Shown here in pieces: positions 9,687-62,536 of a stretch of 64,000 nucleotides of DNA. This stretch comes from Anthoceros angustus (Eukaryota; Plantae; Anthocerotophyta), in NCBI GenBank assembly GCA_010909165.1, contig MU008153.1:372001-436000 (forward strand), read 5' to 3'. The notes beneath the pieces were generated by a model, which was not told the origin of the DNA, ran no database searches, and saw nothing but the letters and a program-made list of their open reading frames with translations. Both the position numbers and the translations under genes were made by a program. Position 1 is the stretch's first letter. Every line of letters begins with the position of its first letter.

Positions 9687-12600
9687 CTTGGCTGAGGAGG
9701 TTTATGGAGTCGTGCTGGAGCGGTGTTCAGGGAGTGGTGTTCTCAAGGGTTTTGGAGCGGTGAGCGGTGTTGTCAAGGGTCTTCTATATATGGTCTTTTC
9801 CAGGGTCTTCTCCAGGTCTTTTTACATGGCTCCCCAGTATGATGCGGGCCACCCAATCTACGCCTATCAAGGACACCCCTTGCCCGGTCTACTCTCAGCT
9901 TTGCTCTGGGGTCAAGGGGGTGAAATGTCACATTGGGCACAAGCACAAAGATTTCGACAAGACTACTTGGGAGGCACAAGTACGGCTTGCTTCTTCTTCC
10001 GGCGCAGCGGCTCACCCAATCCTCTTCCGGCAGCTCCCTTGGGCGCCGGGTCTGGGAGTGGCAGGCGGTCCAACCACTGGCGTTGTTTCACACTCGTTTC
10101 CCGAGCCCCCGTCTTTTTCGGCGGCTCCCGAGGCGTCTTCACGATGATGTTCGCCTTACGTACCGCCTTCCATTGGATCGCCTTGCGCGGGACCCCGGGG
10201 ATGAGGAGGCTTGGACTCTTTTCCTTTTCCTTCCTACATGGTGTCTTCGGCGCTCTAGAGGCGGTTCTTCGGGCCGTAGGGTGGTGGCTTCTCGCCTCCG
10301 CCGCTTTCGGGCGAGGGATTGGGAGGCTCTACAAGAGGAGAATCTTTTGGCGGCAAGATCTAGGTTGGGGTCGGCCAAGGACAACCAGGTTTGTCCGGAC
10401 CCTGGTAAGGCGTGTCTCCGAAGGTGTCATATGTTGGGTCGGAATGGTGAGTACGTGCGGGCCGCTAGGGCTTTACGCCCGGAGCCGGTGCCGGCCTTCG
10501 AGGACACCATCGCTGCGCTCCGTGCCCTTCATTTGGCCCCCAGTGACAGCATTCCACAGGATACCTTCGACTTCGTGCCCGAGGAGCTTTTTTGTCTAGA
10601 CAGGGCAGTCTTTGGTCGGGCCCTCTCCACTGCCCCCCGACTCTCCTCGGGTGGTCTGTCAGGGACAGTTTATGACCACCTTCGAGATTATTTTCCCCAG
10701 AGGATCCATCTAGTGGTTATTTAGAGCTTTTCTTTCTGGCGGCGGCTGTGGCCAGAGGCGAGGTCCCTCGCAGGATCTCCCAGGTCTTAGGGGCTTGCAG
10801 GTTACTAGCTTTGGAGAAACCTACGTCAGGGGTGCGCCCTATTGCTGTCGGAGAGGTGTTCCTGCGCCTCATTAGCCGCAGCATTGCGATTCAACTTCGG
10901 GAGCACTCATAACTCCAGGGGGTTGTGAGTCTGCGGCCTTTGGTATTCAGGCAGTCCTTGAGTCTCGCCCACATTGGGTTGCTCTACAGGTAGATGTCGA
11001 GAATGCCTTCAACACTGTGTCTAGGGCCGTCATTTTCTAGGAACTCAATGACGCAGGAGGGCACCTAGGGGGCCTCATTCCATTTGTTCGCTCCTTCTAC
11101 GATTCTCCATCCAATCTCTACTATCAACATAGTCCAGCTACGGAAGGCGTTTCGGTTCTCCACTCGGCGACGGGCACAAGGCAAGGGGATCCATTGGGAG
11201 GCACGCTCTTCACCATGGCGCACTTCAGGGCACTGTCCTCCACAACCTCTGCAGTTCGGGAGTGCCTTTTCCCATCCGTGGCTGACGATACCCATATCCT
11301 CGGGCCAGGGGACAAGGTGAGGGCTGCATTTGATCTCTTCTCCTTGGAGCTCTCCCGTATAGGATTAAGGGTCAAGATCAATAAGTACAGGGTGTGGTCC
11401 CCTTCCGGCAATACATCCCCTCTTCACTATCCAGGGGGGGATATTATTTCTCCGCAAGGGCTTCGGGTCCTCGGAGTTCCGCTGGGTCCCCCGGACTTTA
11501 TTCAAGGGTGTGTGGACGTGGCTCTGGAAGAAGACATGGCTCACATTGGGGACCTTTCACAAATTGGGGACCCTCAGGTTGCGTTTGGTACTTTGTCTTC
11601 CTGCTTCGCGCATCGACCATGTTATCTTACCAGGACGGTTGTCCCCGGCCTTTTTATCAAGCTTGAGGCATTTTGATAGGCAGGTTATGTAGGCGCTTGG
11701 GGACATTATAGGTCCCGGCACCTTCGAATGCGCTGACGGTGACTTGGCGCGGAAACAAGCATCATTGCCAGTGGCCTTTGGTGGCACTGGCTTGCTGGCC
11801 ATGGAGGCCTCATCTCCGGCAGCTTTCCTCGGGAGTTGGGCCCTCTCTGCCCCAATTTTGGCCTCTCGATTCTTAATGCAGGACTCCCCCCTTCTGGAAG
11901 CCTTCGTCTCGAGTGTTGAGGAGGGGGCCTTCCCCTTGCAGATCTCTCTCAGGCGGGCTAGGGACTCCCTTTCCTTAGAGGCTAGGGAAGACATGCCTCT
12001 ATGTTCCTGTTCGGGGAAGGGGGCAGGCTCCTGGCTTTTGGCTCGGCCTTGCATTCCGGCGTTCCGAATCGCATTAGCATCCTTTTCGACCGCGATGAGG
12101 GTCCGCCTCGGTTTGGCTCATCCTCTGGCCTCTTCTCTTTCCACGTGCAGTTGTGGAGCTGACATCGACGATTCCGAATCCCATTTGGCCCGTTGTCCTG
12201 TGGAGGGGCAACGTATTGCTACGCATGATGCCGTTCGCGACGTCATGTTTTCGATAACTATGGAGAGTGGTTTTTTTTTTATACCGGGAGTGCCCATATA
12301 CATTGCGTAATGGCGTGTCACTCAGGGCAGACCTTTTTTATACTAGGGGAGAGCAAATTTATATCGCTGATGTGGTTGTCACGGATCCCACGAGAGACTC
12401 TATAAGCGAGCATGTCATCATCAACCCCCCGGGCTGGGAGGCGGAAGGATGCGCAAAAAGCAAGACTCATAAGTACTCTCCTATGCAAGACGGCCATGTT
12501 TTCATCCCCCTCGCCCTCGAGACTCATGGGGCTATGGGCAAGGGCTTCTCTAGGTTAATTAAGGAGTGTGCAAAAGTCTATCACAGCCACAGGAATTGGA

Positions 12601-12911
12601 GGGGCCTCCCCCTTTCCTCCGTGGTGGCTTTCTTTCGCCAGCAGGTTTCCATAGCTCTGTAGAAAGTGCTGGCTAACGCTGTTTATAGGATGGCTACGTG
12701 CGCAGGACTAGCGCCTTCTTCGGCACCGGTGGTAGGTAGGCACTTCATCATCCCTGATCACGATATCATTGGTGCAGTAGGTAATTACGGGAAAGGCATT
12801 CTAGGAGACTAGGACTTCCCCTTTTACTATTAGCCCTTTTTGGGTTGTTGCTCCTCGGACTTCAGGGGTAGATGGGGTTCCCCATCTTGTCTATTAATAA
12901 CGTCTACTCTT
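9687..12911 (+). mobile_element. Near-full-length, inactivated CRE-like non-LTR retrotransposon (RT + C-terminal restriction-like endonuclease)
   Basis: RPIAVGEVFLRL, QVDVENAFN, QGDPLGG and VADDTHILG RT motifs; CSC-x9-H-x3-C knuckle, THD, RADL..IADV and FIPLALETHG endonuclease motifs. Frameshifts and in-frame TAG stops at 11038, 11690 and 12660. ctcata flanks both ends (9681, 12912). Confidence 0.85.
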
Positions 12912-34337: not shown

Positions 34338-36260
34338 CTAAATCCCTTCCACCTTGATTTGAAGGCGAGGTTGCGGAACGGGCTCCGTGGCGGGGCGGTT
34401 GTAGTGTTGGTGGAGCTGGACGCGGTAGAACTTTTTGGTGCGGTTGTACAAGACCGTGGCAGCCAAGGCACCGGCGAGGCAAAAGACAGCCATGATGGCG
34501 AAAGCGAGGCGGAAACAGAGGGGACCGGTGCAGTCGATCTGGTCCGAGCCGTCGGCGGCGAAAAGGCGGGGAACCCGCGAGAAGAGGCGTTTGCGCATCC
34601 GTTCCGTGAGAGGCTTTCCGTTGAGGTTGGCCTGCCTGCTGGCTTGGATGTCGTAGAGGCAGCCGGCGATCTGGACGGAGAGCAGGTAGGCGCTTATCGG
34701 GTTGCTGACGGACACCAGGTTGAGCAGCGTGCCGAAGCTCCGCAGCCCGAAGAGCTCGGACGTGCACACCGGAATGAGGGCCCAGATCCCGCCATAGCTC
34801 AGCCCGATGGAGATCGAGCCGAGGTAGAGGCTGCCGGAGAAGGCTCCGGCCAGCACCAGGTGGCCTGCAGCAAGCATGGCCAGGCAGAGGACGAGGAAGC
34901 CGGGCCGCGGTATCCCCCGCTTGTGCAGAGCCAATTCTGAGAGAAGCCCGGATCCGACTCTGCCGAGGAAGTTCCAGATTGAGACGAGTGAGACGAATGT
35001 GTGCACGCGCGACTGGGAGTACCCTAGCGATGTTCCGACCTGGCTCAGGTTGTCGATGGCTGTCAGCCCTGACCCGATCCCTAAGCTGGATGCAAGCAGG
35101 AGGAGCCAGAAGTCCGCCCCGCTGATGGCTTCTAGCAAGCTGAAATCGTCTCCTCGCTGCGGACGCGGCTTGGGAGGCGGGGCGAGCTCGTCCGGATCCT
35201 GAAGCTTGCTCTGATTGATGTCAGTGTAGGCCGGGGAAGATGATCCTGCTTCCGATCTGGAGTAGCCGTTCTCAGGGGTGTCTGGATCTGAAGGTGGATC
35301 GACATGTAATAGTTTCTTGGAGGAGGAGGAGGAGAAGGAGGGGGGAGAGGAGGAGCGGTGCTTGGAATTAATGACCTTGTCCTCGTCTTGGCGATGGCGA
35401 TCTGGCAGCAGAGGGGCCTTGAGTGAGGAGGAGGAGGAAGAAAGGGTAGTCTCCTTGTACTGGGATTTGATGGCCACACCTACAGGAAGGATCAGCATGA
35501 GCAAGATGACGGACACAATTAGCCAGATCCAGGTTGTTCCAATTGCGACAGAATCCTCCACCATGATCACAGCCATAAGGAAGACGGAGAGGGAGAGAGC
35601 GATGGCGGAGACGAGGAGGAGGTTCTTGATCTCATCTGGCTCCTTTTTCTGTGTCTCGAGAGGTCTGACGACGAACATAACGGCCACGGGAAGCACGGTG
35701 CTGAGCCAGGACACCATGAGGAGGAAGCTGCTTTGGTCCTGCCCGTAGATGGCCAGCCAGAGTTGCGTCAGGATGGCGCTGCTGAGGCCGGAGAATCCCT
35801 TCATCATCCCAACCATAATGCCACGGTTCATGGGGAAGTTCTTGACGCAGGTGACAACAGCCGCGGTGTGGAGGTACGTTTGCCCGTTGGCAGCAATGCA
35901 GATGTAGCAGCACATTTGCCAGAGTGCCGGCTGCTCGACCTGCCCGGTCATGGCCATCCACATCATGGTGTAGCCGTACAAATTCTGCGCGGCTCCGATC
36001 ACCAGGACGCCCCACGGCGGGAAGCGGTCGTACAGCAAGCCGGAGATGATTCCCACGCTCTCTCCCAGATCCTTGAACCAGCCGAGGGTATCCAGTGTTT
36101 GCTGGTCGTACCCCATGCCATCCTTGAGCTCGCCGGAGTACAGGCTGAAATTGTAGGACGCGCCGGAGACAGCCTGAATCCACATGCTCACCACCAGGAT
36201 GAACCATCGGTTCCTCACCAAATCCGCCACGAATCTCAGGTACTTGTCCGCTCTCTCCAT
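34338..36260 (-). CDS. Nodulin-like / NFD4-like major facilitator superfamily transporter (640 aa, intronless)
   Basis: NRWFILVVSMWIQAVSGASYNFSLYSGELK; GWFKDLGESVGIISG; TCVKNFPMNRGIMVGMMKGFSGLSSAILTQL; SELFGLRSFGTLLN; CTGPLCFRLAF. Confidence 0.95.
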   Translation of the reverse strand: MERADKYLRFVADLVRNRWFILVVSMWIQAVSGASYNFSLYSGELKDGMGYDQQTLDTLGWFKDLGESVGIISGLLYDRFPPWGVLVIGAAQNLYGYTMMWMAMTGQVEQPALWQMCCYICIAANGQTYLHTAAVVTCVKNFPMNRGIMVGMMKGFSGLSSAILTQLWLAIYGQDQSSFLLMVSWLSTVLPVAVMFVVRPLETQKKEPDEIKNLLLVSAIALSLSVFLMAVIMVEDSVAIGTTWIWLIVSVILLMLILPVGVAIKSQYKETTLSSSSSSLKAPLLPDRHRQDEDKVINSKHRSSSPPSFSSSSSKKLLHVDPPSDPDTPENGYSRSEAGSSSPAYTDINQSKLQDPDELAPPPKPRPQRGDDFSLLEAISGADFWLLLLASSLGIGSGLTAIDNLSQVGTSLGYSQSRVHTFVSLVSIWNFLGRVGSGLLSELALHKRGIPRPGFLVLCLAMLAAGHLVLAGAFSGSLYLGSISIGLSYGGIWALIPVCTSELFGLRSFGTLLNLVSVSNPISAYLLSVQIAGCLYDIQASRQANLNGKPLTERMRKRLFSRVPRLFAADGSDQIDCTGPLCFRLAFAIMAVFCLAGALAATVLYNRTKKFYRVQLHQHYNRPATEPVPQPRLQIKVEGI

Positions 36261-41829: not shown

Positions 41830-42240
41830 TTGTGAGCTTGGAGGATACGCTGAAATTGCTTCTCTTGCAAGCTTGAGGGAGGATAAGCTGAGATTGCTTC
41901 TCTTGAGATTTGCTTCTCTTGTGAGCTTGAGATTTGCTTCTCTTGTGTGAGCTTCTCTTGTGTGCTTGAGATTTGCTTCTCTTGTGTGAGCTTGGAGGAT
42001 GAGTTGCTTCTCTTGTGAGGTGGAGATAAGCTGAGGGATAAAGCTGAGATTGCTCTCTTTTGAGGATAAAGCTGAGATTGCTCTCTTTTGAGGATAAAGC
42101 TGAGATTGCTCTCTTTGGAGGATAAAGCTGAGATTGCTGTCTTGTGAGCTTGGAGTGAGGAAGCATAGATTTGTTGCTTCCTGTCTGGTGAGCTTGGAGT
42201 GAGGGAGCGGAGATTTGTTGCTTCTTCACTCAGAGATTTG
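41830..42240. repeat. Low-complexity gcttctcttgtgagc / 28-bp minisatellite upstream of the C2 gene
   Basis: gaggataaagctgagattgctctcttt repeated with a 28-bp period at ~42034-42140. Confidence 0.8.
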
Positions 42241-42267
42241 TTGCTTTCTTGGTGTGAAGAAGCAGCG

Positions 42268-43491
42268 ATGGGGGAGAGAATTTTGGAGATCAAGGTTATA
42301 TCGGCGGAAGAGTTAAAGCAGGTGAAATGGACGGGGAAGATGAGCCCTTACGTCGTGGTTTGGATATATCCCGAGCAGAAGGTGAGCACCACAACATGTA
42401 TGGAAGGAGGGAAGAATCCTAAGTGGGACGAAACTCTCCAGCTCAAGGTCGAAGAGCGGCATCTCCACGTCCCTAGGATGACCATCAGTATCGAGGTGTT
42501 GCACAATGGCACGTTCGGAGAGGTCTCTCTTGGGACTGCCAACTTCCCTCTCACGGAGGTGACCAAAGAGTGGAAGGACGGCTCCACAAGTCCACAGTAC
42601 CTGGCTTACCAGCTCCGGCGGCCGTCCGGAAGGACGCAGGGAGTTGTCAATCTGGCCATCTCCTTGGTTCCCAAGGTTGGCGGGTCGGGTGAACATGAGG
42701 CGAGTGCGCCTGCTGCACCTGAGGTTGCTGTCCCTCCTACGACAGTTGCCTCTCCTGTGGATACGACAGTTGCCTCTCCTGTAGATAGGACAGTTGCTTC
42801 TCCTGTGGAGTCTTCGTCTGTGACAGCAGCGGCGAAGCCTGAGCTGGGGAAGGAGACTGTTGCAGCAGAGAAAGTGGAGGCCAAGGGAGAAGCTACGAAG
42901 GAGCCGCCATTAGCACCTTACCCCGGTGCTGTACCCTACGGTCAGGGTTTGCCTCCGGCAGGGCTTCCACAGGGATACCCTGCTCCTGTTCCTGCTGGTG
43001 CAGGGTATCCACAAGGCTATCCTCCCGCGCCTCAGAGCTATCCTCCTCCCCAAGCAGGTTATGCTCCTCCCCAAGCAGGCTATGCTCCTCCTCCAGCAGG
43101 CTATCCTCCCACGGGATACCCTCAAGGCTACCCTCTTCCTGCAGGCTATGCTTATCCTCCTCCCGCAGCCTATCCCCAAGGCTATCCTCAGCCTCAGCCC
43201 GGTCAGGCATACCCGCAAGGAGGATATCCTCAGCTGTATCAAGGCTACCCTCCTTATGCTGGTGCCCCTGCTGCGTCTTATGCCTACCCTCAGCAGCAGC
43301 CGTATCCCCTGCAGCAGCAATATGCTGTTCAGCAACCCCAGAAGCCGAACAGATTTGGAGGGCTAGGAGCCGGTGCTGCTGGGCTTGGATTGGGGTTGGG
43401 GGCAGGTCTGCTTGGTGGTGTCTTGCTAGAGGAAGCATTAGATAACGACAACGATAACGATTACGACTACGACGATGGTGGAGATTTTTGA
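42268..43491 (+). CDS. SRC2: SRC2-like C2-domain protein with Pro/Tyr/Gly/Gln-rich tail
   Basis: ILEIKVISAEELK..MSPYVVVWI..GGKNPKWDETL..LAYQLRRPSGRTQGVVNL; YPPP repeats; GLGAGLLGGVLLEEA...DYDYDDGGDF end. ATG at 42268. Confidence 0.88.
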   Translation: MGERILEIKVISAEELKQVKWTGKMSPYVVVWIYPEQKVSTTTCMEGGKNPKWDETLQLKVEERHLHVPRMTISIEVLHNGTFGEVSLGTANFPLTEVTKEWKDGSTSPQYLAYQLRRPSGRTQGVVNLAISLVPKVGGSGEHEASAPAAPEVAVPPTTVASPVDTTVASPVDRTVASPVESSSVTAAAKPELGKETVAAEKVEAKGEATKEPPLAPYPGAVPYGQGLPPAGLPQGYPAPVPAGAGYPQGYPPAPQSYPPPQAGYAPPQAGYAPPPAGYPPTGYPQGYPLPAGYAYPPPAAYPQGYPQPQPGQAYPQGGYPQLYQGYPPYAGAPAASYAYPQQQPYPLQQQYAVQQPQKPNRFGGLGAGAAGLGLGLGAGLLGGVLLEEALDNDNDNDYDYDDGGDF

Positions 43492-51469: not shown

Positions 51470-51780
51470 GTTTCAAACATGGTGAATATGTAGAAATCCG
51501 ATCTGACACCCAGCCAAGGAAGGATGATAGAAACCCAAACGTGATGAATACGTAGAAATCCGGCCCGACACCTTGCCACGAACGTAAGGATGACAGAAAC
51601 CCAAATGTGGTGAATACGTAGAAATCCGGCCCGACACCCAGCCACGTAAGGATGATAGAAACCCAAATGTGGTGAACACCTAGAAATCCAGCCCGACACC
51701 CAGCCACGTAAGGATTGACAGAAACACAAATGTGGTGAAGACGTAGAAAACTGGTTCGACACCCAGCCACGTAAGGGTGA
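51470..51780. repeat. ~62-bp tandem array, 5 copies
   Basis: ggtgaatacgtagaaatccggcccgacacccagccacgtaaggatgatagaaacccaaatgt units at ~51481, 51543, 51609, 51671, 51733. Confidence 0.9.
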
Positions 51781-52128
51781 CATTTTCTAAGAACTTTCGC
51801 ATATTCCTATGAGAGAGGGAATGGGTGTCCCGAACGGGCCACCTGCGTAAAGCCGCCATGACTCAAAGAGCCATATGTTTAAAACGCAAGCAACAACTTC
51901 CCTAAAAAACCACGGAAACCTAGACGCACCCAGTGTCGCGGGAACTAAGTGTCCGAAACGGCATGCCATAGAAGAGCTGCCTGACCACACACTGTAGACC
52001 CAAGAACAAGATAAGAACACGATGTAGACGAGGCACACACCCAAGACCTTCACGTTGTACTGCAACTTGAAATTTCGCAAATTCATAACGAGGTCCCGAA
52101 AACCTGAGGCGCACAGACCGTTTGGAAG

Positions 52129-52502: not shown

Positions 52503-53090
52503 ATGCCAGCCATGGAGACGTCTCTGATCGCGCAGCCGGGAGCAGCCGGCCTGGGCAAGGACAGGTCTGTGCTGGCCCTGGCCAAGGCGTCCGCCCGGAA
52601 GGCTGCCTCGGGATGGCTCACCGCCAGGCACAGGCAGCCCCGCTCTCTCCCGGCACCGGACAATTCCGCTGCTCTCCTGGCCGGGCCTGGTGCCCGGACC
52701 GCTTCCTTCCGGGACGCTCCCTCCTTCCGGGACGCCCCCTCCTTCCGGGATGCTTCCTGTCGGGTTTCATCCTTCCGGGCTTCCTCCTTCAGGGTGTCCT
52801 CGTTCCGGGATTCCTCGGGGCTGGAGAGCGGGCTGGGAAGCTCCTGCAGCTATGATGGGGGAAAGGGTGGGGAGGAAGAAGGTAGTGCGGAATGTGGGAA
52901 GGAGAAGAGGTCGTTCTTTGGGAAGGCGGTGCGGAAGCTGGCCAAGCTCGGGCGGAAGAAGGACAAGAAACAGTGTGGGATGGATGGCAGGGCCATGGCG
53001 GGAGAGGGCAGCGGGGCAGGGTGGGGGTCTGTGCATCTGCGTGTGGCGGCTGCCGTTGCCAGCGGAGCGGCGGGTACAGGATTGCGGTAG
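52503..53090 (+). CDS. Putative 195-aa protein with repeated SFR motifs and a basic patch
   Basis: ATG-started ORF with in-frame repeats SFRDAP/SSFR and FFGKAVRKLAKLGRKKDKK. The region is GC-rich, so it may be spurious or a 5' part of the downstream gene. Confidence 0.4.
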   Translation: MPAMETSLIAQPGAAGLGKDRSVLALAKASARKAASGWLTARHRQPRSLPAPDNSAALLAGPGARTASFRDAPSFRDAPSFRDASCRVSSFRASSFRVSSFRDSSGLESGLGSSCSYDGGKGGEEEGSAECGKEKRSFFGKAVRKLAKLGRKKDKKQCGMDGRAMAGEGSGAGWGSVHLRVAAAVASGAAGTGLR

Positions 53091-53214: not shown

Positions 53215-55367
53215 ATGGAGAGTGTGCTTGGGGGCGGGGGTGATCGGGATGGGGAGGAGGAGGACGGGTGGAGAGGACGGAGATGGAGGTATGGAGCGGG
53301 GCCTTTTGCGTCTGTGAACCTGCCTGCGAGGAGCGGCGTGCAGGGTTTCCCCGGGAGCCCTCCGAGGACTGGGTCTGAGCAGCCGGAGAGGAACCTTCAG
53401 CAGATTTTGCCGAGGCTGCAGGCCCCTGCGGTTGTTTCGTTAGGGCCTCCGAGCTCGGAGGTGAAGGTGCCGACAGTGCCGCCGCCGGCTGAGCTAGAGA
53501 GGCATCCGGGGGGAAGTTCTGATGGTCTTGTGCCTGCTGGGCCGGAGGTTTCTCAGAGCTCGGGACCCGGAGTGGCGGAATTGAGGCAGCCGGAGGAGGT
53601 TCCTGGGGCTGAGCTTGAAGTGCATCCTGGAGGATCTGGTAGTAGCTTGTCCGGGAAGCGAGGAAGTGGGAAGAGTGGAGATTTTATGGAATGGGTTGTT
53701 GGACTTGTGCACGCACTCGTGCCAGGTGGGCAGGGAAGGAGTGATGATAGCGAGGCTGAGAGGAGGAAGCTTGTCGAGGAGACGGCAGCGCATGTGATGC
53801 AGCTTATCTTTGAGGGAACTGGGGATGAAGGCCTTGCCAAGAGAAAGGAGGTGATTTTTGTTTGTGTGTGCGCTTGCTTCTAGGGTTTTCATGTGGATGT
53901 GTTGTGGAGGAGGAGGCCAGAGGTTGTCGCTGGCTGCTCATCTGTCCAACTGGTGGAGTGAATGGGTTGTTGCAGACTGGGGCATTGCGACGGCTGCAAC
54001 GAGAATCGTTCTCCGACTTGCTGAAGATGCGGGAGCGCCTGGATAAACTTGAGTTGCATACTGGGCTGCGGCAATTGAAGAACTTTGGCAGTTCATCTGG
54101 ATTGTCGAAGACGCAGTTGAGAGGAAATGTGGGCGCAGGAGGTGCTCTTGTTTTGATGAAGGACAACAACAGTAGGCAATCACGAAATGCGCTTGAGAAT
54201 GCCGGAATGCTGACTGGGCTGGAAGTGAAGTTCAGGTTTGAGACCAGTTTCAGAGACAACGACAAGCTGGTCACAGAATGTGTTGCGGGACAAGGAAGCG
54301 AGGCTGGTTCTGATGCCACCTTCGGTGGGCCCATTTCCATAAGGAAAGTGGCTTACACTGCTGAGATCTCCGACAGACTCAGTGTCGCTGTTGCGCCTCT
54401 TGGAGGGGATAGCAGTGATATGCTGCAAGCAGTTAATCCCTTGCAGGTACGTCATCGATTGCTGACTTGCGCGTTCGTGCGTGCTCACGTTGCTGTTGGG
54501 TATCTAATCCTCTTGTGAAACACTGTTCTTTCCACTCAGGATGTTGGTTTGACCTCGTTCAGCAGCAATGGGCCCATCCTCTACAGCCACTGCAAGGGAT
54601 CTGGTGTAGGAGCAACAGTCAAGGGAACAAGATCTGTGTGCTCTTTTTCGCAGTACATTGGTGGTTGGGAGAACTGCGTTTCCGGTTTTGGGGCAGCTGA
54701 TTCTGGAGCACCTCTTTGCCTGAGCACGGTTGCACAGCTCACCGCTGTTCCTGCTGACTTCTTGGCTGTCTCATTAACAGCATTGAACAGATACTGGCCT
54801 AGCCCGCCCCTTCCTTCTCATCACAGTCTGCACTGGAGCGAGATGGGACCTCTCGTCCTGAGCAAAACCCAGTCCTCAGCTTCATCACGTTCTCTTGGAA
54901 GTTCAAATGGCTCCGTTGCCAATGGTCAGCTTGTTAACTGGAGCACCTCCGACCTGGATACTGGGGCTCTGGACAGCAAGGGGGCGGCGATGCAATCGTT
55001 TGCCCTCGCTGCAGAAGCAGATCTGGGTCCCGTCAATTTGGGTGGATGGGCTCAAGTGGATCGCAGTGACTGGCTTCTGGATTCAGAGAAGAAGCAGGTG
55101 CAGTGGGCATTGACAATGGCCAAGTCTGCTGGAGACCACGTTGTCGGGGGTCTAACCATCGGCCGGTCGAAGCCTGATTTGTGGAGTTCAACTAAAGGTG
55201 ATGAGGGCAGCTTTTCAAGCCAAACAGATCTTTCCCAGATGCAGGTGGAGGCGTTCCTGAGGTTGAAGTGTGCAGCAGGGTTTGTTCTACAGCCTGGCCT
55301 GTTGTACACGGCGAACAAGCAGTCTCGAACGCCTGCTGTCATGCTAAGGTCCTCCTGGACGCTCTGA
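53215..55367 (+). CDS. Putative beta-barrel (cyanobacterial OprB/SomA-porin-like) protein. Exons 53215-53850, 53976-54446, 54540-55367 (~644 aa)
   Basis: Phase-0 GT-AG joins. Coiled coil LRRLQRESFSDLLKMRERLDKLE, then TQLRGNV, FRFETSFRDNDKL, AYTAEISDRLSV, VEAFLRL...VLQPGLLY and the terminal strand MLRSSWTL. Gene structure is solid; function is inferred. Confidence 0.8.
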
Positions 55368-58728: not shown

Positions 58729-61700
58729 ATGGCCACAGTATGGCAACCGGACCAATTATGGACCCAACAAATTTGTGTGTGTACAGGGATTCTACGAGGA
58801 GCTCCCGCTCACCTCACCACAGGGACTCAAGCCCCGGCAAACCACCAAACCTCCAGGTGCTGCAGTGTAAGGAGCCCAGTTTTTCCACTTCCGAGAAAAT
58901 GTGTGGGTGGGGACGGCTTTTCCAGCGATGGTCGTCGCCAGAAGCAGGAGCAGCAGCAGCAGCAGGAGCACTTGTGGCAACAATTGTTTCTGGACCCTAC
59001 CATGTGGTGGGACAACCGACGAGATAAGAAGAGCTCCCGTTTGCCTGACTTCCGTCGTAAGGGGTCCGGCGAGGTGCTGTGGTTAGACAGCATGTCGAAG
59101 CCAGCTTGGGTTGATGAGCAGCTCGTTTCCTTGGATATGCAGATGGGTCATGGTGACTCTCCCTCCAAGTTCAGCTCTCCGGATAATCCTGAACCTGGGA
59201 GGCGTGCAGCATCGGAAATGGGCTCAAGGGGGAGCAATGTAAGGAGCCCAGCTCTTCCACTTCCGAGGAAATTTGCCGGTGTGAACGGGTTGTCCAACGT
59301 TGGTCGTCGCCAGGAGCAGGAGCAGGAGCACTTGTGGCAAGAATTTTTTCTGGAGCCTACCATGTGGTGGGACAACAGGCGAGATAAGAAGAGCTCCCGT
59401 TCGCCTGACTTCCGGCGGAAGGGGTCCGGCGAGGTGCTGTGGTTAAACAACATGTTTAAGCCAGCTTGGGTTGATGAGCAGCTCGTTTCCTTGGATATGC
59501 AGATGGGTCATGGTGCCTCTCCTTCCGAGTCCAGCTCTCCGGATAAGCCTGAACCTGGCAGGCGTGCAGGATCGGAAATGGGCGTCGTAACGGCTGTAAC
59601 CGTGAGCACGTTATGTCAGCAGGGGAAGCTTTCTGAGGCCGTTGGAGCCCTGGAATCTCTGGCGCAGACAGACTCTGCTATTTCTCAGTCTCTGTTTTAC
59701 ACTGTGCTGAAACTGTGTACAGCTAAGAAGGATCTGGTTGTGGGGCGACGAGTTCATGACCTCACTGTCAAACTCGGGTACGAGTCGGATGCATACTTGG
59801 GGAACCATATCTTGCGCATGTATGCATGTGGAGGTAGTCTGCAGGAGGCCATGGATGTGTTCACCAGGGTGGGCAAACCAGATGCCTTCATGTGGTTTTC
59901 CATAATCTCGGCATATGCTAAGCATGGGAAACCTAAGGAGGCCATACAATTGTACCATGAGATGCGTAGGTCAGGAGTGAAGGTGAATGGTCACGTCTTT
60001 GTAGCTGCCCTTCAAGCATGTACATTTGCTGCCGACTTGGAATCTGGCAGAAAAGTGCACTATGATGTGCTGCACAGTGGCATTCCCATTAACTTGTTTG
60101 TTGGCAATTGCCTGGTTGACATGTATGCAAAATGTGGTGAACTGGAAGATGCACGCCAGGTTTTTGACAGCATGCCCACAAGGGATGTAGTGACATGGAC
60201 GGCACTGATTGCGGGGTATGCCGAGCAAGGGCTTGGACACGAGGCGCTTGTTCTGTATGGACAAATGGAGCAGGAGGGGCTGATTTTGGCTAACCATGTT
60301 ACTTTTGCTTGCCTTCTGAAGGCCTGTGCAAGCACTGGTTCTTTACAGAAGGGCAGGCAGTTGCACTCACACATTGTGGAAAGAGGACTGCTGGATGACG
60401 TAGTGTTGGGCAACCTTGGTGGACATGTATGCAAAATGTGGTGAACTGAAGATGCACGCCAGGTTTTGACAGCATGGCCACAAAGGATGTGGTGACATGG
60501 ACTGATATCTGGGTATGCAAAATGTGGTGAACTGAAGATGCACGCCAGGTTTTGACAGCATGAACACAAAGGATGTGGTGACATGGAATGCCCTGATTGC
60601 TGGGTATGCAAGGACTAGGACATGAGGCACTTGTTCTGTATGGACAAATGGAGAAGGAGGCCTCATTTTGGCTAACCATGTTACTTGCCTTCTGAAGGCC
60701 TGTGCAAGCACTGGTGCCTTACAGAAGGGCAGGCAGCTCACACATTGTGGAAGAGGACTGCTGGATGACGTAGTGTTGGGCAACCTTGGTGGACATGTAT
60801 GCAAAATGTGGTGAACTGAAGATGCACGCCAGGTTTTGACAGCATGGCCACAAAGGATGTGGTGACATGGACTGATATCTGGGTATGCAAAATGTGGTGA
60901 ACTGAAGATGCACGCCAGGTTTTGACAGCATGAACACAAAGGATGTGGTGACATGGAATGCCCTGATTGCTGGGTATGCAAGGACTAGGACATGAGGCAC
61001 TTGTTCTGTATGGACAAATGGAGAAGGAGGCCTCATTTTGGCTGACCATGTTACTTGCCTTCTGAAGGCCTGTGCAAGCACTGGTGCCTTACAGAAGGGC
61101 AGGCAGCTCACACATTGTGGAAGAGGACTGCTGGATGACGTAGTGTTGGGCAACCTTGGTGGACATGTATGCAAAATGTGGTGAACTGAAGATGCACGCC
61201 AGGTTTTGACAGCATGGCCACAAAGGATGTGGTGACATGGACTGATATCTGGGTATGCAAAATGTGGTGAACTGAAGATGCACGCCAGGTTTTTGACAGC
61301 ATGAACACAAAGAATGTGGTGACATGGAATGCCCTGATAGCTGGGTATGCGGAGCAAGAGCTAGGACATGAGGCACTTCTTCTGTATGGACAAATGGAGA
61401 AGGAGGGCCTCATTTTGGCTGACCATATTACTTTTGCTTGCCTTCTGAAGGCCTGTGGAAGCACTGGTGCCTTACACAAAGGGAGGGAGCTGCACTTACA
61501 GATTGTGGAAAGAGGACTGCTGGATAACATGGTGTTGGGCAACTGCCTGGTGGACATGTATGCAAAATGTGGCGATCTGGAAGATGCACGCCAGGTTTTT
61601 GACAGCATGAACACAAAGGATGTGGTGACATGGAATGCCCTGATATCTGGGTATGGTACTTGTGATGAAGGTCACAAGGCACTAGCTTGTTTTGAGGAGA

Positions 61701-62536
61701 TGTTAGTTGCCGGTATTCAGCCTAATGATGCTACTTTTACTTGCCTTTTGGTAGCATGCAGTCATGAGGGACTGGTCGACGAGGGTCGCAAGCACTTTGA
61801 TTCCATGGCTGAACAGTATGGTATCAAACCTACTATTGAGCATTACACGTGCATGATTGATCTTCTTGGGCGTGCAGGCCATTTACATGAGGCTGAGAAG
61901 ATGCTATTGTCATGTGAGGGCCAAAGTGATGTCGTTGGGTTGATGTGTTTGCTGAATGCCTGCAAAAACCATGGGGATATAAAGAGGGCGATGTGGTGTT
62001 TTGAAAGCATTGTTAGGCTGGACCCCCAGCAGGCGCCCGCGTATGTGCTTATGGCCAATGCGTACGCAGATGCAGGCAGGTGGACCGATGTAGACAGGAT
62101 TGAAACAAAGAGAAGGGTAGCAGGAGCCAACAAGAAACCTGCAGTGGCGACCATTGAGGTGAAAAAGGAGGTACATAGATTTGTGGTGGGAGAAAGGGGA
62201 GAGGACATTGCGCTTAAGGTAGAGAGCACAAATGCACGTCTGAAGCAGGAAGGAGGCCACGTGCCTCACACAAAGTTGGTGTTGAAGCCAATGTCTGAGA
62301 AGGAAAAGGAAGATATGCTTTGCGGGCATGCTGAGAAGCTAGCTCTGGCGTTTGGTCTCTTGAATACTCCGAGTGGAACACCTCTAGTGGTCACTAAGAA
62401 TCTGCGCATGTGCAGCGACTGCCACAGTTCCACGGAGATCATGTCAAGGCTTGAACAGAGAGACATTGTTGTAAGGGATGGGTACCGTGTGCATCGATTC
62501 GCAGCTGGTTGTTGCAGTTGTAACGGTCGACCGTGA
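58729..62536 (+). CDS. PLS-class PPR RNA-editing factor with two N-terminal PDF-like motifs and a C-terminal E1/E2-DYW:KP domain ending GRP; frame broken at ~60411-61300
   Basis: P/L/S motifs (VVTWTALIAGYAEQG, HVTFACLLKAC, GNCLVDMYAKCG); HYTCMIDLLGRAG; KKPAVATIEV; HAEKLALAFG; KNLRMCSDCH; terminal CSCNGRP. Confidence 0.9.
60411..61300. repeat. 370-bp tandem array (~2.4 copies) of deletion-riddled PPR motifs
   Basis: caaccttggtggacatgtatgc at 60411, 60781 and 61151; units almost identical. Confidence 0.95.

Follow-up and report, generated by a model that had tools for sequence, protein, structure and literature searches.

Here, we describe a gene in a window of 64,000 nucleotides (nt) from Anthoceros angustus (GenBank assembly GCA_010909165.1, contig MU008153.1, positions 372,001 to 436,000 of the forward strand; all positions below are those of the window). 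The evidence makes it quite likely that this gene is the orthologue of Arabidopsis UP1 (At1g11320), a nuclear-encoded chloroplast-envelope beta-barrel protein homologous to cyanobacterial porins built from an SLH domain, a coiled coil and an OprB barrel. An initial annotation, made from the letters alone, had taken the gene for an endosymbiont-derived relative of cyanobacterial OprB/SomA-type porins that had lost its SLH domain and belonged to a class not known among the described outer-envelope proteins (OEPs). Our analysis supports this inference as right but not new, since Imai et al. (2011) had already linked At1g11320 to cyanobacterial SomB as its homologue and favoured a chloroplast barrel over a mitochondrial one (PMC3045335).

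The gene lies on the + strand at 53215-55367, exactly where it had been annotated, and has three exons, with coding sequence at 53215-53850, 53976-54446 and 54540-55367. Spliced, these give 1935 nt that translate into 644 amino acids with no internal stop. The splice model is supported because fern, gymnosperm, liverwort and moss homologues align with the product from residues 171-216 to the final residue, crossing both junctions unbroken; homologue alignments start at residues 153-207. Junction 1, which homologues span, reads KRKE before and TGALRRLQ after the splice, and over junction 2 the homologue P0002 reads VNPLQGHALTQF continuously. The gene is intact. Conservation is limited to residues ~155-644; the first ~150 residues, rich in G, P, S and E, match nothing, and because of this the start could be either M1 (53215) or M158 (53686). 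The features of the gene and its product are given below, with barrel strands placed by aligning the protein (family alignment A2) to an AlphaFold2 model of a liverwort homologue, P0013.

53215-53850, + strand: exon 1, residues 1-212; residues 1 to ~150 are low-complexity and unconserved, judging from the translation and homologue alignments.
End of exon 1, + strand: conserved pre-coil helical segment, residues ~155-212; residues ~155-215 match the N-terminal parts of homologues.
53686, + strand: alternative start M158, from the translation; the low-complexity part upstream of it is unconserved.
53851-53975, + strand: intron 1, 125 nt, GT..AG (GTGATT..TTGCAG), phase 0, from splice sites in the sequence and from homologues.
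53976-54059, + strand: predicted coiled-coil "stalk" helix ALRRLQRESFSDLLKMRERLDKLE, which maps to helix 27-61 of the P0013 model.
54114-54410, + strand: predicted barrel strands 1-5 and loop 1 with a helix, from the strand map of the P0013 model through alignment A2.
54411-54446, + strand: first part of the strand 5-6 loop (L3 position), with VNPLQ, to the end of exon 2; it aligns with the cyanobacterial loop NP...G.GA.S.F..NPIY.
54447-54539, + strand: intron 2, 93 nt, GT..AG (GTACGT..ACTCAG), phase 0, from splice sites and from homologue P0002 across the junction.
54540-54593, + strand: second part of the strand 5-6 loop, with short helices in the model, from the P0013 and cyanobacterial models.
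54594-54797, + strand: predicted barrel strands 6-9, from the P0013 model map.
54798-54983, + strand: strand 9-10 loop, long and modelled with low confidence, containing WPSPPLPS..LHWSEMGPLVL, where the predicted local distance difference test score (pLDDT) of the model is <50.
54984-55364, + strand: predicted barrel strands 10-16, with VEAFLRLKCAAGFVLQPG as strands 14-15 and the end SSWTL, from the model map; aligns to the cyanobacterial HxEAFY..DNISITPG.
55365-55367, + strand: stop codon TGA, from the sequence.

Directly upstream of the gene there are tandem repeats at 51505-51782 and 52704-52816. They consist of a 62-nt unit present 4.4 times and of 18/15-nt units, with SFRDAP repeats in one frame, and are located in a G-skewed region with 61% GC.

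The Arabidopsis member of the family (At1g11320/UP1; P0331, Q9SXB7, NP_172599; 424 amino acids) aligns by BLASTP with the exon-2 piece of the window protein at E 1e-29 (44% identity) and, up to the C-terminus, with the exon-3 piece at E 1e-15. P0182, the representative of the cluster that contains P0331, matches the family profile over positions 1-423 (E 6.6e-157), and Q9SXB7 holds SDGRTIGL, the segment that Imai et al. (2011) gave for At1g11320. UP1 and the window protein have in common the pre-coil helix, the coiled coil and a 16-strand barrel, collinear to the final residue, with an identity of 44% from the coil to strand 5 and 23% elsewhere. The window protein differs in an extra N-terminus of ~150 residues, which is the unconserved low-complexity part, and in a longer strand 9-10 loop. 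On the strength of these alignments, the window gene is probably the UP1 orthologue.

The link to cyanobacteria had been drawn from seven motifs of the window protein, set against a series of motifs of cyanobacterial SLH porins. All seven occur in the window protein in the order given, and the cyanobacterial series proved to be real. To gather cyanobacterial porins, we searched bacterial genomes with a degenerate DNA pattern encoding EFAAGLNAC, a peptide of the SLH domain, and retrieved 120 loci, cyanobacterial in every case named by organism. The encoded open reading frames (ORFs) carry SLH (PF00395) and OprB (PF04966) at threshold, with OprB scores of 125 and 53 bits in the controls, and 61 diverse SLH-plus-OprB porins formed the comparison set for hhalign. 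Their consensus reproduces this series of motifs: LQRLQEEFAAELATLRGRVDxLE, TTTKLxGE, TSFTGxDxL, LxYxFP, NP, HxEAFY..DNISITPG and LRTTFxF. In the window protein the stalk motif LQ.EF..EL..LRGRVD.LE likewise stands directly before strand 1, as LQRESFSDLLKMRERLDKLE.

Profile similarity to these porins, which the initial annotation had named as the test of its reading, is strong. The full plant and cyanobacterial alignments matched with Prob 99.0 and E 2.7e-18 over 349 columns, the barrel taken separately with Prob 98.7 and E 1.7e-16 over 320 columns, and the coil with Prob 91.3 and E 9.7e-7 over 33 columns. The main alignment is collinear: it begins right after the cyanobacterial SLH domain and ends at the penultimate strand. 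Each half of the plant barrel also matched the cyanobacterial barrel in register (strands 1-7, Prob 96.1, E 2.9e-9, 136 columns; strands 8-16, Prob 95.9, E 6e-9, 165 columns). When the cyanobacterial sequences were reversed, the match fell to Prob 0.1 and E 0.63 over 13 columns for the barrel, and to Prob 0.1 and E 0.75 over 46 columns for the full alignment; the likeness is well above what chance would give. Because hhalign, its controls and the matching structural models (see below) agree, homology between the plant and cyanobacterial proteins is well supported for the coil as well as for the barrel.

These controls bear directly on the idea that the likeness is a generic one between amphipathic strands and coiled coils, or that the protein is in truth a GDSL esterase/lipase or an Omp85/D15 protein. 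Five family members (P0331, P0181, P0120, P0115 and P0172) do carry the database names "GDSL esterase/lipase" and "Bacterial surface antigen (D15) domain-containing protein", and searches at the level of HMMER leave the plant and cyanobacterial families unconnected. However, none of the five has a GDSL or D15 Pfam match even at E<=10, the real comparisons reach E 1e-16 to 1e-20 against 0.6-0.75 for the reversed ones, and the coil and the two barrel halves each give an in-register match when compared alone. The hhalign controls and the Pfam scans effectively refute this explanation, and we regard its chance of being correct as vanishingly small.

For the fold, AlphaFold2 was run on P0013, the homologue from Riccia (45% identical), with an alignment of 88 sequences that included the products of window exons 2 and 3. 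The resulting model has a mean pLDDT of 79.3 and a predicted template modelling score (pTM) of 0.71, and consists of helices at 3-23 and 27-61 followed by 16 beta-strands to the C-terminus, which bears out the coiled coil and ensuing beta-strands that had been read from the window sequence. A 30-residue loop between strands 5 and 6 contains three short helices and, by its position in the model, is likely the constriction loop; a second long loop, between strands 9 and 10, has low confidence. The motif WPSPPLPS..LHWSEMGPLVL in the latter loop is kept among non-seed-plant members. The 16 strands and the helix-bearing strand 5-6 loop of this homologue model are as in general porins (the OmpF/OmpM/OprB fold). 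Against the PDB, Foldseek named as best matches the 16-stranded trimeric bacterial porins OmpT, OmpM1 (rank 2), VhChiP and Omp32, followed among others by OmpF/C/K36, OprB (rank 13) and DcaP; nearly all of the top 50 are 16-strand porins, together with a few 18-strand channels (OccK1/OpdK, OccAB3, MOMP). The proposed beta-barrel is found in the predicted fold, with 16-stranded porins, OmpM1 and OprB among them, as the nearest solved structures.

A cyanobacterial porin modelled in the same way (pLDDT 80.0) shows a coil at 120-157, a barrel of 16 strands and, in the strand 5-6 loop, three short helices, and it retrieves the same set of PDB porins as the plant model, with OprB at rank 4. The coil abuts strand 1 in both models. 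Cyanobacterial porins of this type (SomA/SomB, Slr1841; TCDB 1.B.23 CBP) are like the plant family in several collinear features at once, namely the coil motif, the 16 strands, the NP-containing strand 5-6 loop, the EAF..PG hairpin and the LR(S/T)(S/T)(W/F)x(L/F) end. The plant protein differs from them in that it is nuclear-encoded with introns, is only ~16% identical, and is without the signal peptide region plus SLH domain. SLH (PF00395) was found neither in the window pieces nor in any plant or algal member examined, long N-terminal forms included, and the hhalign alignment begins just past the cyanobacterial SLH domain; the proposed loss of this domain holds.

All relatives of the window protein that we found are from plants or green algae. 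Word-index searches recovered ~370, nearly all of them "uncharacterized" or "hypothetical" and with no Pfam domain on record, and an HMMER profile search of 1.84 billion representative proteins returned 278 at E<=1e-3. For each of the best 150 of these 278, E is at most 1.4e-20; every one looked up by name is plant or green algal, and the remainder of the 150 are mostly short pieces. With just 278 proteins returned and the best 150 of them inspected, the large OprB family was not reached by HMMER. Members include green algae (Chlorokybus, [Myrmecia] bisecta, Tetraselmis), monocots (Oryza, Elaeis, Musa, Carex), ferns, Taxus, Riccia, Sphagnum and many eudicots, and the family spans Viridiplantae. 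A word search seeded with a protein labelled "Thlaspi arvense" had suggested absence from Brassicaceae, which we rejected because the Arabidopsis member Q9SXB7 exists. That seed itself (P0046, CAH2050335.1) clusters at >=90% identity with a protein of Bertholletia excelsa and has 74% identity to Actinidia; it lacks Brassicaceae neighbours and is closest to Ericales; its label or its contig is probably wrong, through contamination.

Flowering-plant members are about 400-425 amino acids long. Most non-seed-plant and gymnosperm members, and some algal ones, have N-termini extended by 140 to nearly 900 amino acids, and these extensions are unconserved in sequence except for the last ~60 residues before the coil; we found no SLH relic or other conserved domain in the long extensions of non-seed-plant members. 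Conservation within the family peaks in the coil, where 18 of 34 columns are at least 90% conserved compared with ~15% of columns in the barrel (alignment A2). The coil exceeds the barrel by far in this respect, though the SLH domain once joined to it is gone.

A location in the chloroplast envelope is supported for the Arabidopsis orthologue only. Bouchnak et al. (2019) named this protein UP1 and reported an envelope enrichment factor of 8.0 and a UP1::GFP fusion in the envelope only (PMC6601204), and a 2026 Plant Journal paper used UP1 as an envelope marker in a FAST fusion (PMC13263057). In a preprint on cold acclimation, the protein, taken as a "GDSL esterase/lipase", is reported to depart from the envelope in the cold (10.1101/813725). 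Of the plastid outer envelope location originally proposed, then, the envelope part stands for Arabidopsis UP1. Imai et al. (2011) had left open a mitochondrial or dual-targeted outer-membrane barrel: the Arabidopsis member had surfaced in their screen for mitochondrial barrels, with a weak match resembling a beta-signal, which they themselves judged not genuine (PMC3045335). Such a location is highly unlikely given the enrichment of UP1 in purified envelope and the envelope-only fusion (PMC6601204), and given a 16-strand fold for which no VDAC or Tom40 structure appeared among the 50 Foldseek matches listed. Nor does Porin_3 occur among 25 families that the Pfam scan listed for 88 members. 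Identity with the plant mitochondrial barrel OM47 (At3g27930) was considered and rejected; the printed OM47 sequence (PMC5100019 supplement) shares no motif with the family, and the two are unrelated.

Among solved structures, OmpM1 of Veillonella parvula (PDB 8BYM/8BYS/8BYT) comes closest in architecture. This 16-strand porin forms trimers and has a triple coiled coil as its N-terminal stalk (PMC10628300). Its stalk shares the motif RL..EF..EL..L..RV..LE with the plant family, and the architecture of SLH-coiled-coil-OprB porins is that of OmpM of diderm Firmicutes. Unlike the plant family, OmpM1 has an SLH domain, which binds polyaminated peptidoglycan; the protein is an outer-membrane tether to peptidoglycan and a diffusion pore in one, with the triple coiled coil joining SLH to barrel (PMC10628300). 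Pseudomonas putida OprB (PDB 4GEY), a carbohydrate-selective porin, is a 16-strand barrel like the plant model, but nothing points to sugar selectivity of the plant protein.

The window protein would sit in the outer envelope membrane, because barrels are found there, and would form a trimer that, as in OmpM1, is held together by a triple coiled coil, here facing the intermembrane space. It would act as a passive channel for solutes or ions, narrowed by the strand 5-6 loop, and its coil may have retained a separate function despite the loss of the wall anchor, either in trimerisation or in binding a partner that faces the intermembrane space. The main rival to such a channel is a barrel of mainly structural use with little conductance, its pore closed or plugged, whose coil links the outer envelope to a partner in the intermembrane space or inner envelope, or to surviving plastid peptidoglycan. 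The higher conservation of the coil fits such a tether, as do the long N-terminal extensions of non-seed plants and the fact that the bacterial relatives tether as well as conduct (PMC10628300); further, the major outer-membrane proteins of Synechocystis pass inorganic molecules and not organic substances (PMC9705863). However, the SLH domain that would bind a wall is gone, the extensions are unconserved in sequence, and the helix-bearing strand 5-6 loop typical of an open porin has been kept. We give the tether a small but appreciable chance.

Several points weigh against the identification of the window gene as an envelope porin of cyanobacterial kin. Pfam scans of the window pieces and ~110 family members gave no family at threshold. 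For OprB (PF04966), the gathering threshold of 22.9 bits was not reached, the window pieces having no match and one of 88 members giving the best value, E 0.13. A search of PDB sequences with the plant profile gave no match at E<=10. Because the Pfam OprB and PDB sequence searches fail, family membership rests on profile-profile and fold evidence. The cyanobacterial profile itself found at sequence level only the SLH-plus-coil part of OmpM1 (Veillonella) and of SlpA (Deinococcus), and did not find P. putida OprB at E<=0.01. The structure was modelled for a homologue of 45% identity rather than for the window protein, whose final residue is Leu where bacterial porins end in Phe. The localisation rests on an overexpressed C-terminal GFP fusion in Arabidopsis, and the outer and inner envelope membranes were not distinguished for UP1 (PMC6601204). 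For no member of the family did a literature search turn up mutants, measurements of channel activity, or work on topology or oligomeric state.

Also on this side is the occurrence of SLH-stalk porins outside cyanobacteria (OmpM1, SlpA; TCDB table, PMC4827864), which raises the alternative that the gene came by horizontal transfer from a non-cyanobacterial bacterium with such porins and not from the plastid ancestor. The coil motif and architecture are indeed the same in OmpM1 of Negativicutes and SlpA of Deinococcus, and TCDB places the CBP family in several phyla (PMC4827864). We nevertheless regard transfer of this kind as distinctly unlikely: the family occurs throughout green algae and land plants, its orthologue is in the plastid envelope, its profile match to cyanobacterial sequences is very strong, and only three outer-membrane barrels, OprB-type porins among them, are conserved across all cyanobacteria (PMC4365693). 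An origin from the endosymbiont, with the gene having moved from the cyanobacterial endosymbiont to the nucleus, would be the simplest reading, and the UP1 family appears to be the plastid copy of the third core outer-membrane barrel of cyanobacteria.

Other beta-barrels of organelle outer membranes that are thought to be solute carriers, namely OEP21, OEP24, OEP37, OEP40 and OM47/VDAC, belong to families unrelated to UP1. How outer-envelope channels evolved was the subject of a 2025 preprint, which covered OEP21, OEP24, OEP37, OEP40 and JASSY and not the UP1 family. It found no supported match to cyanobacteria for any of its five families: HHpred gave only poorly supported matches (E > 0.09) for OEP24, OEP37 and OEP40, and a single well-supported one for OEP21, to pea OEP21 (10.1101/2025.06.18.660430). 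The UP1 family, unlike OEP21, OEP24, OEP37 and OEP40, matches cyanobacterial porins strongly. Among the 76 families of outer-membrane pores surveyed in 2016, the OprB and cyanobacterial-porin families have no plant members listed (PMC4827864), and our literature search for links between SomA/SomB and chloroplast barrels, or for the names OEP44-49, found nothing beyond Imai et al. (2011).

The family bears on how metabolites pass through the chloroplast outer envelope and on which outer-membrane proteins of the cyanobacterial ancestor survived. A bolder proposal, which we put forward tentatively and consider rather improbable, is that the UP1 family is the direct plastid descendant of an OmpM-type tether-porin: still a trimer on its near-invariant coil stalk in the intermembrane space, it would form a major general diffusion pore of the outer envelope, with the stalk and pre-coil helix contacting a partner in the inner envelope or, where a plastid wall survives, in that wall. 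If this were true, plastids would have kept a third core barrel after Omp85 and LptD, one overlooked by surveys of outer-envelope channels. The novelty of the present case is modest, because the family has already been recorded, localised and linked to SomB, and the window gene itself is nothing new in kind. Its value is as a pointer to an overlooked and mis-annotated candidate envelope pore, noted since 2011 and easily testable: the family is conserved from green algae to crops, and an Arabidopsis locus and an envelope-localised fusion already exist. Meanwhile, an envelope-proteomics preprint (10.1101/813725) has adopted the misnomer "GDSL esterase/lipase" uncritically.

The 64-kb window as a whole is land-plant nuclear DNA, with genes for PPR, PPR-E-DYW, nodulin-like transporter, C2-domain and thioredoxin-domain proteins. 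Overlapping long ORFs at 9688-12662 (+ strand) form a GC-rich block (57% GC at 10-12 kb) that may be a decayed mobile element; two pieces of it, scanned against Pfam, gave no match. A one-exon gene at 34338-36260 (- strand) encodes a nodulin-like/NFD4 membrane protein of the major-facilitator type (Pfam E 3.6e-80), and the gene at 42199-43491 (+ strand) encodes a C2-domain protein with a long C-terminal tail rich in Pro, Gln, Tyr and Gly that ends in an acidic D/N/Y stretch. Two PPR genes are neighbours on the + strand at 58729-60444 and 61301-62536, the second with E and DYW deaminase domains of the RNA-editing factor type. Between them, recurring antisense ORFs at 60060-61614 mirror the near-identical PPR repeat units.

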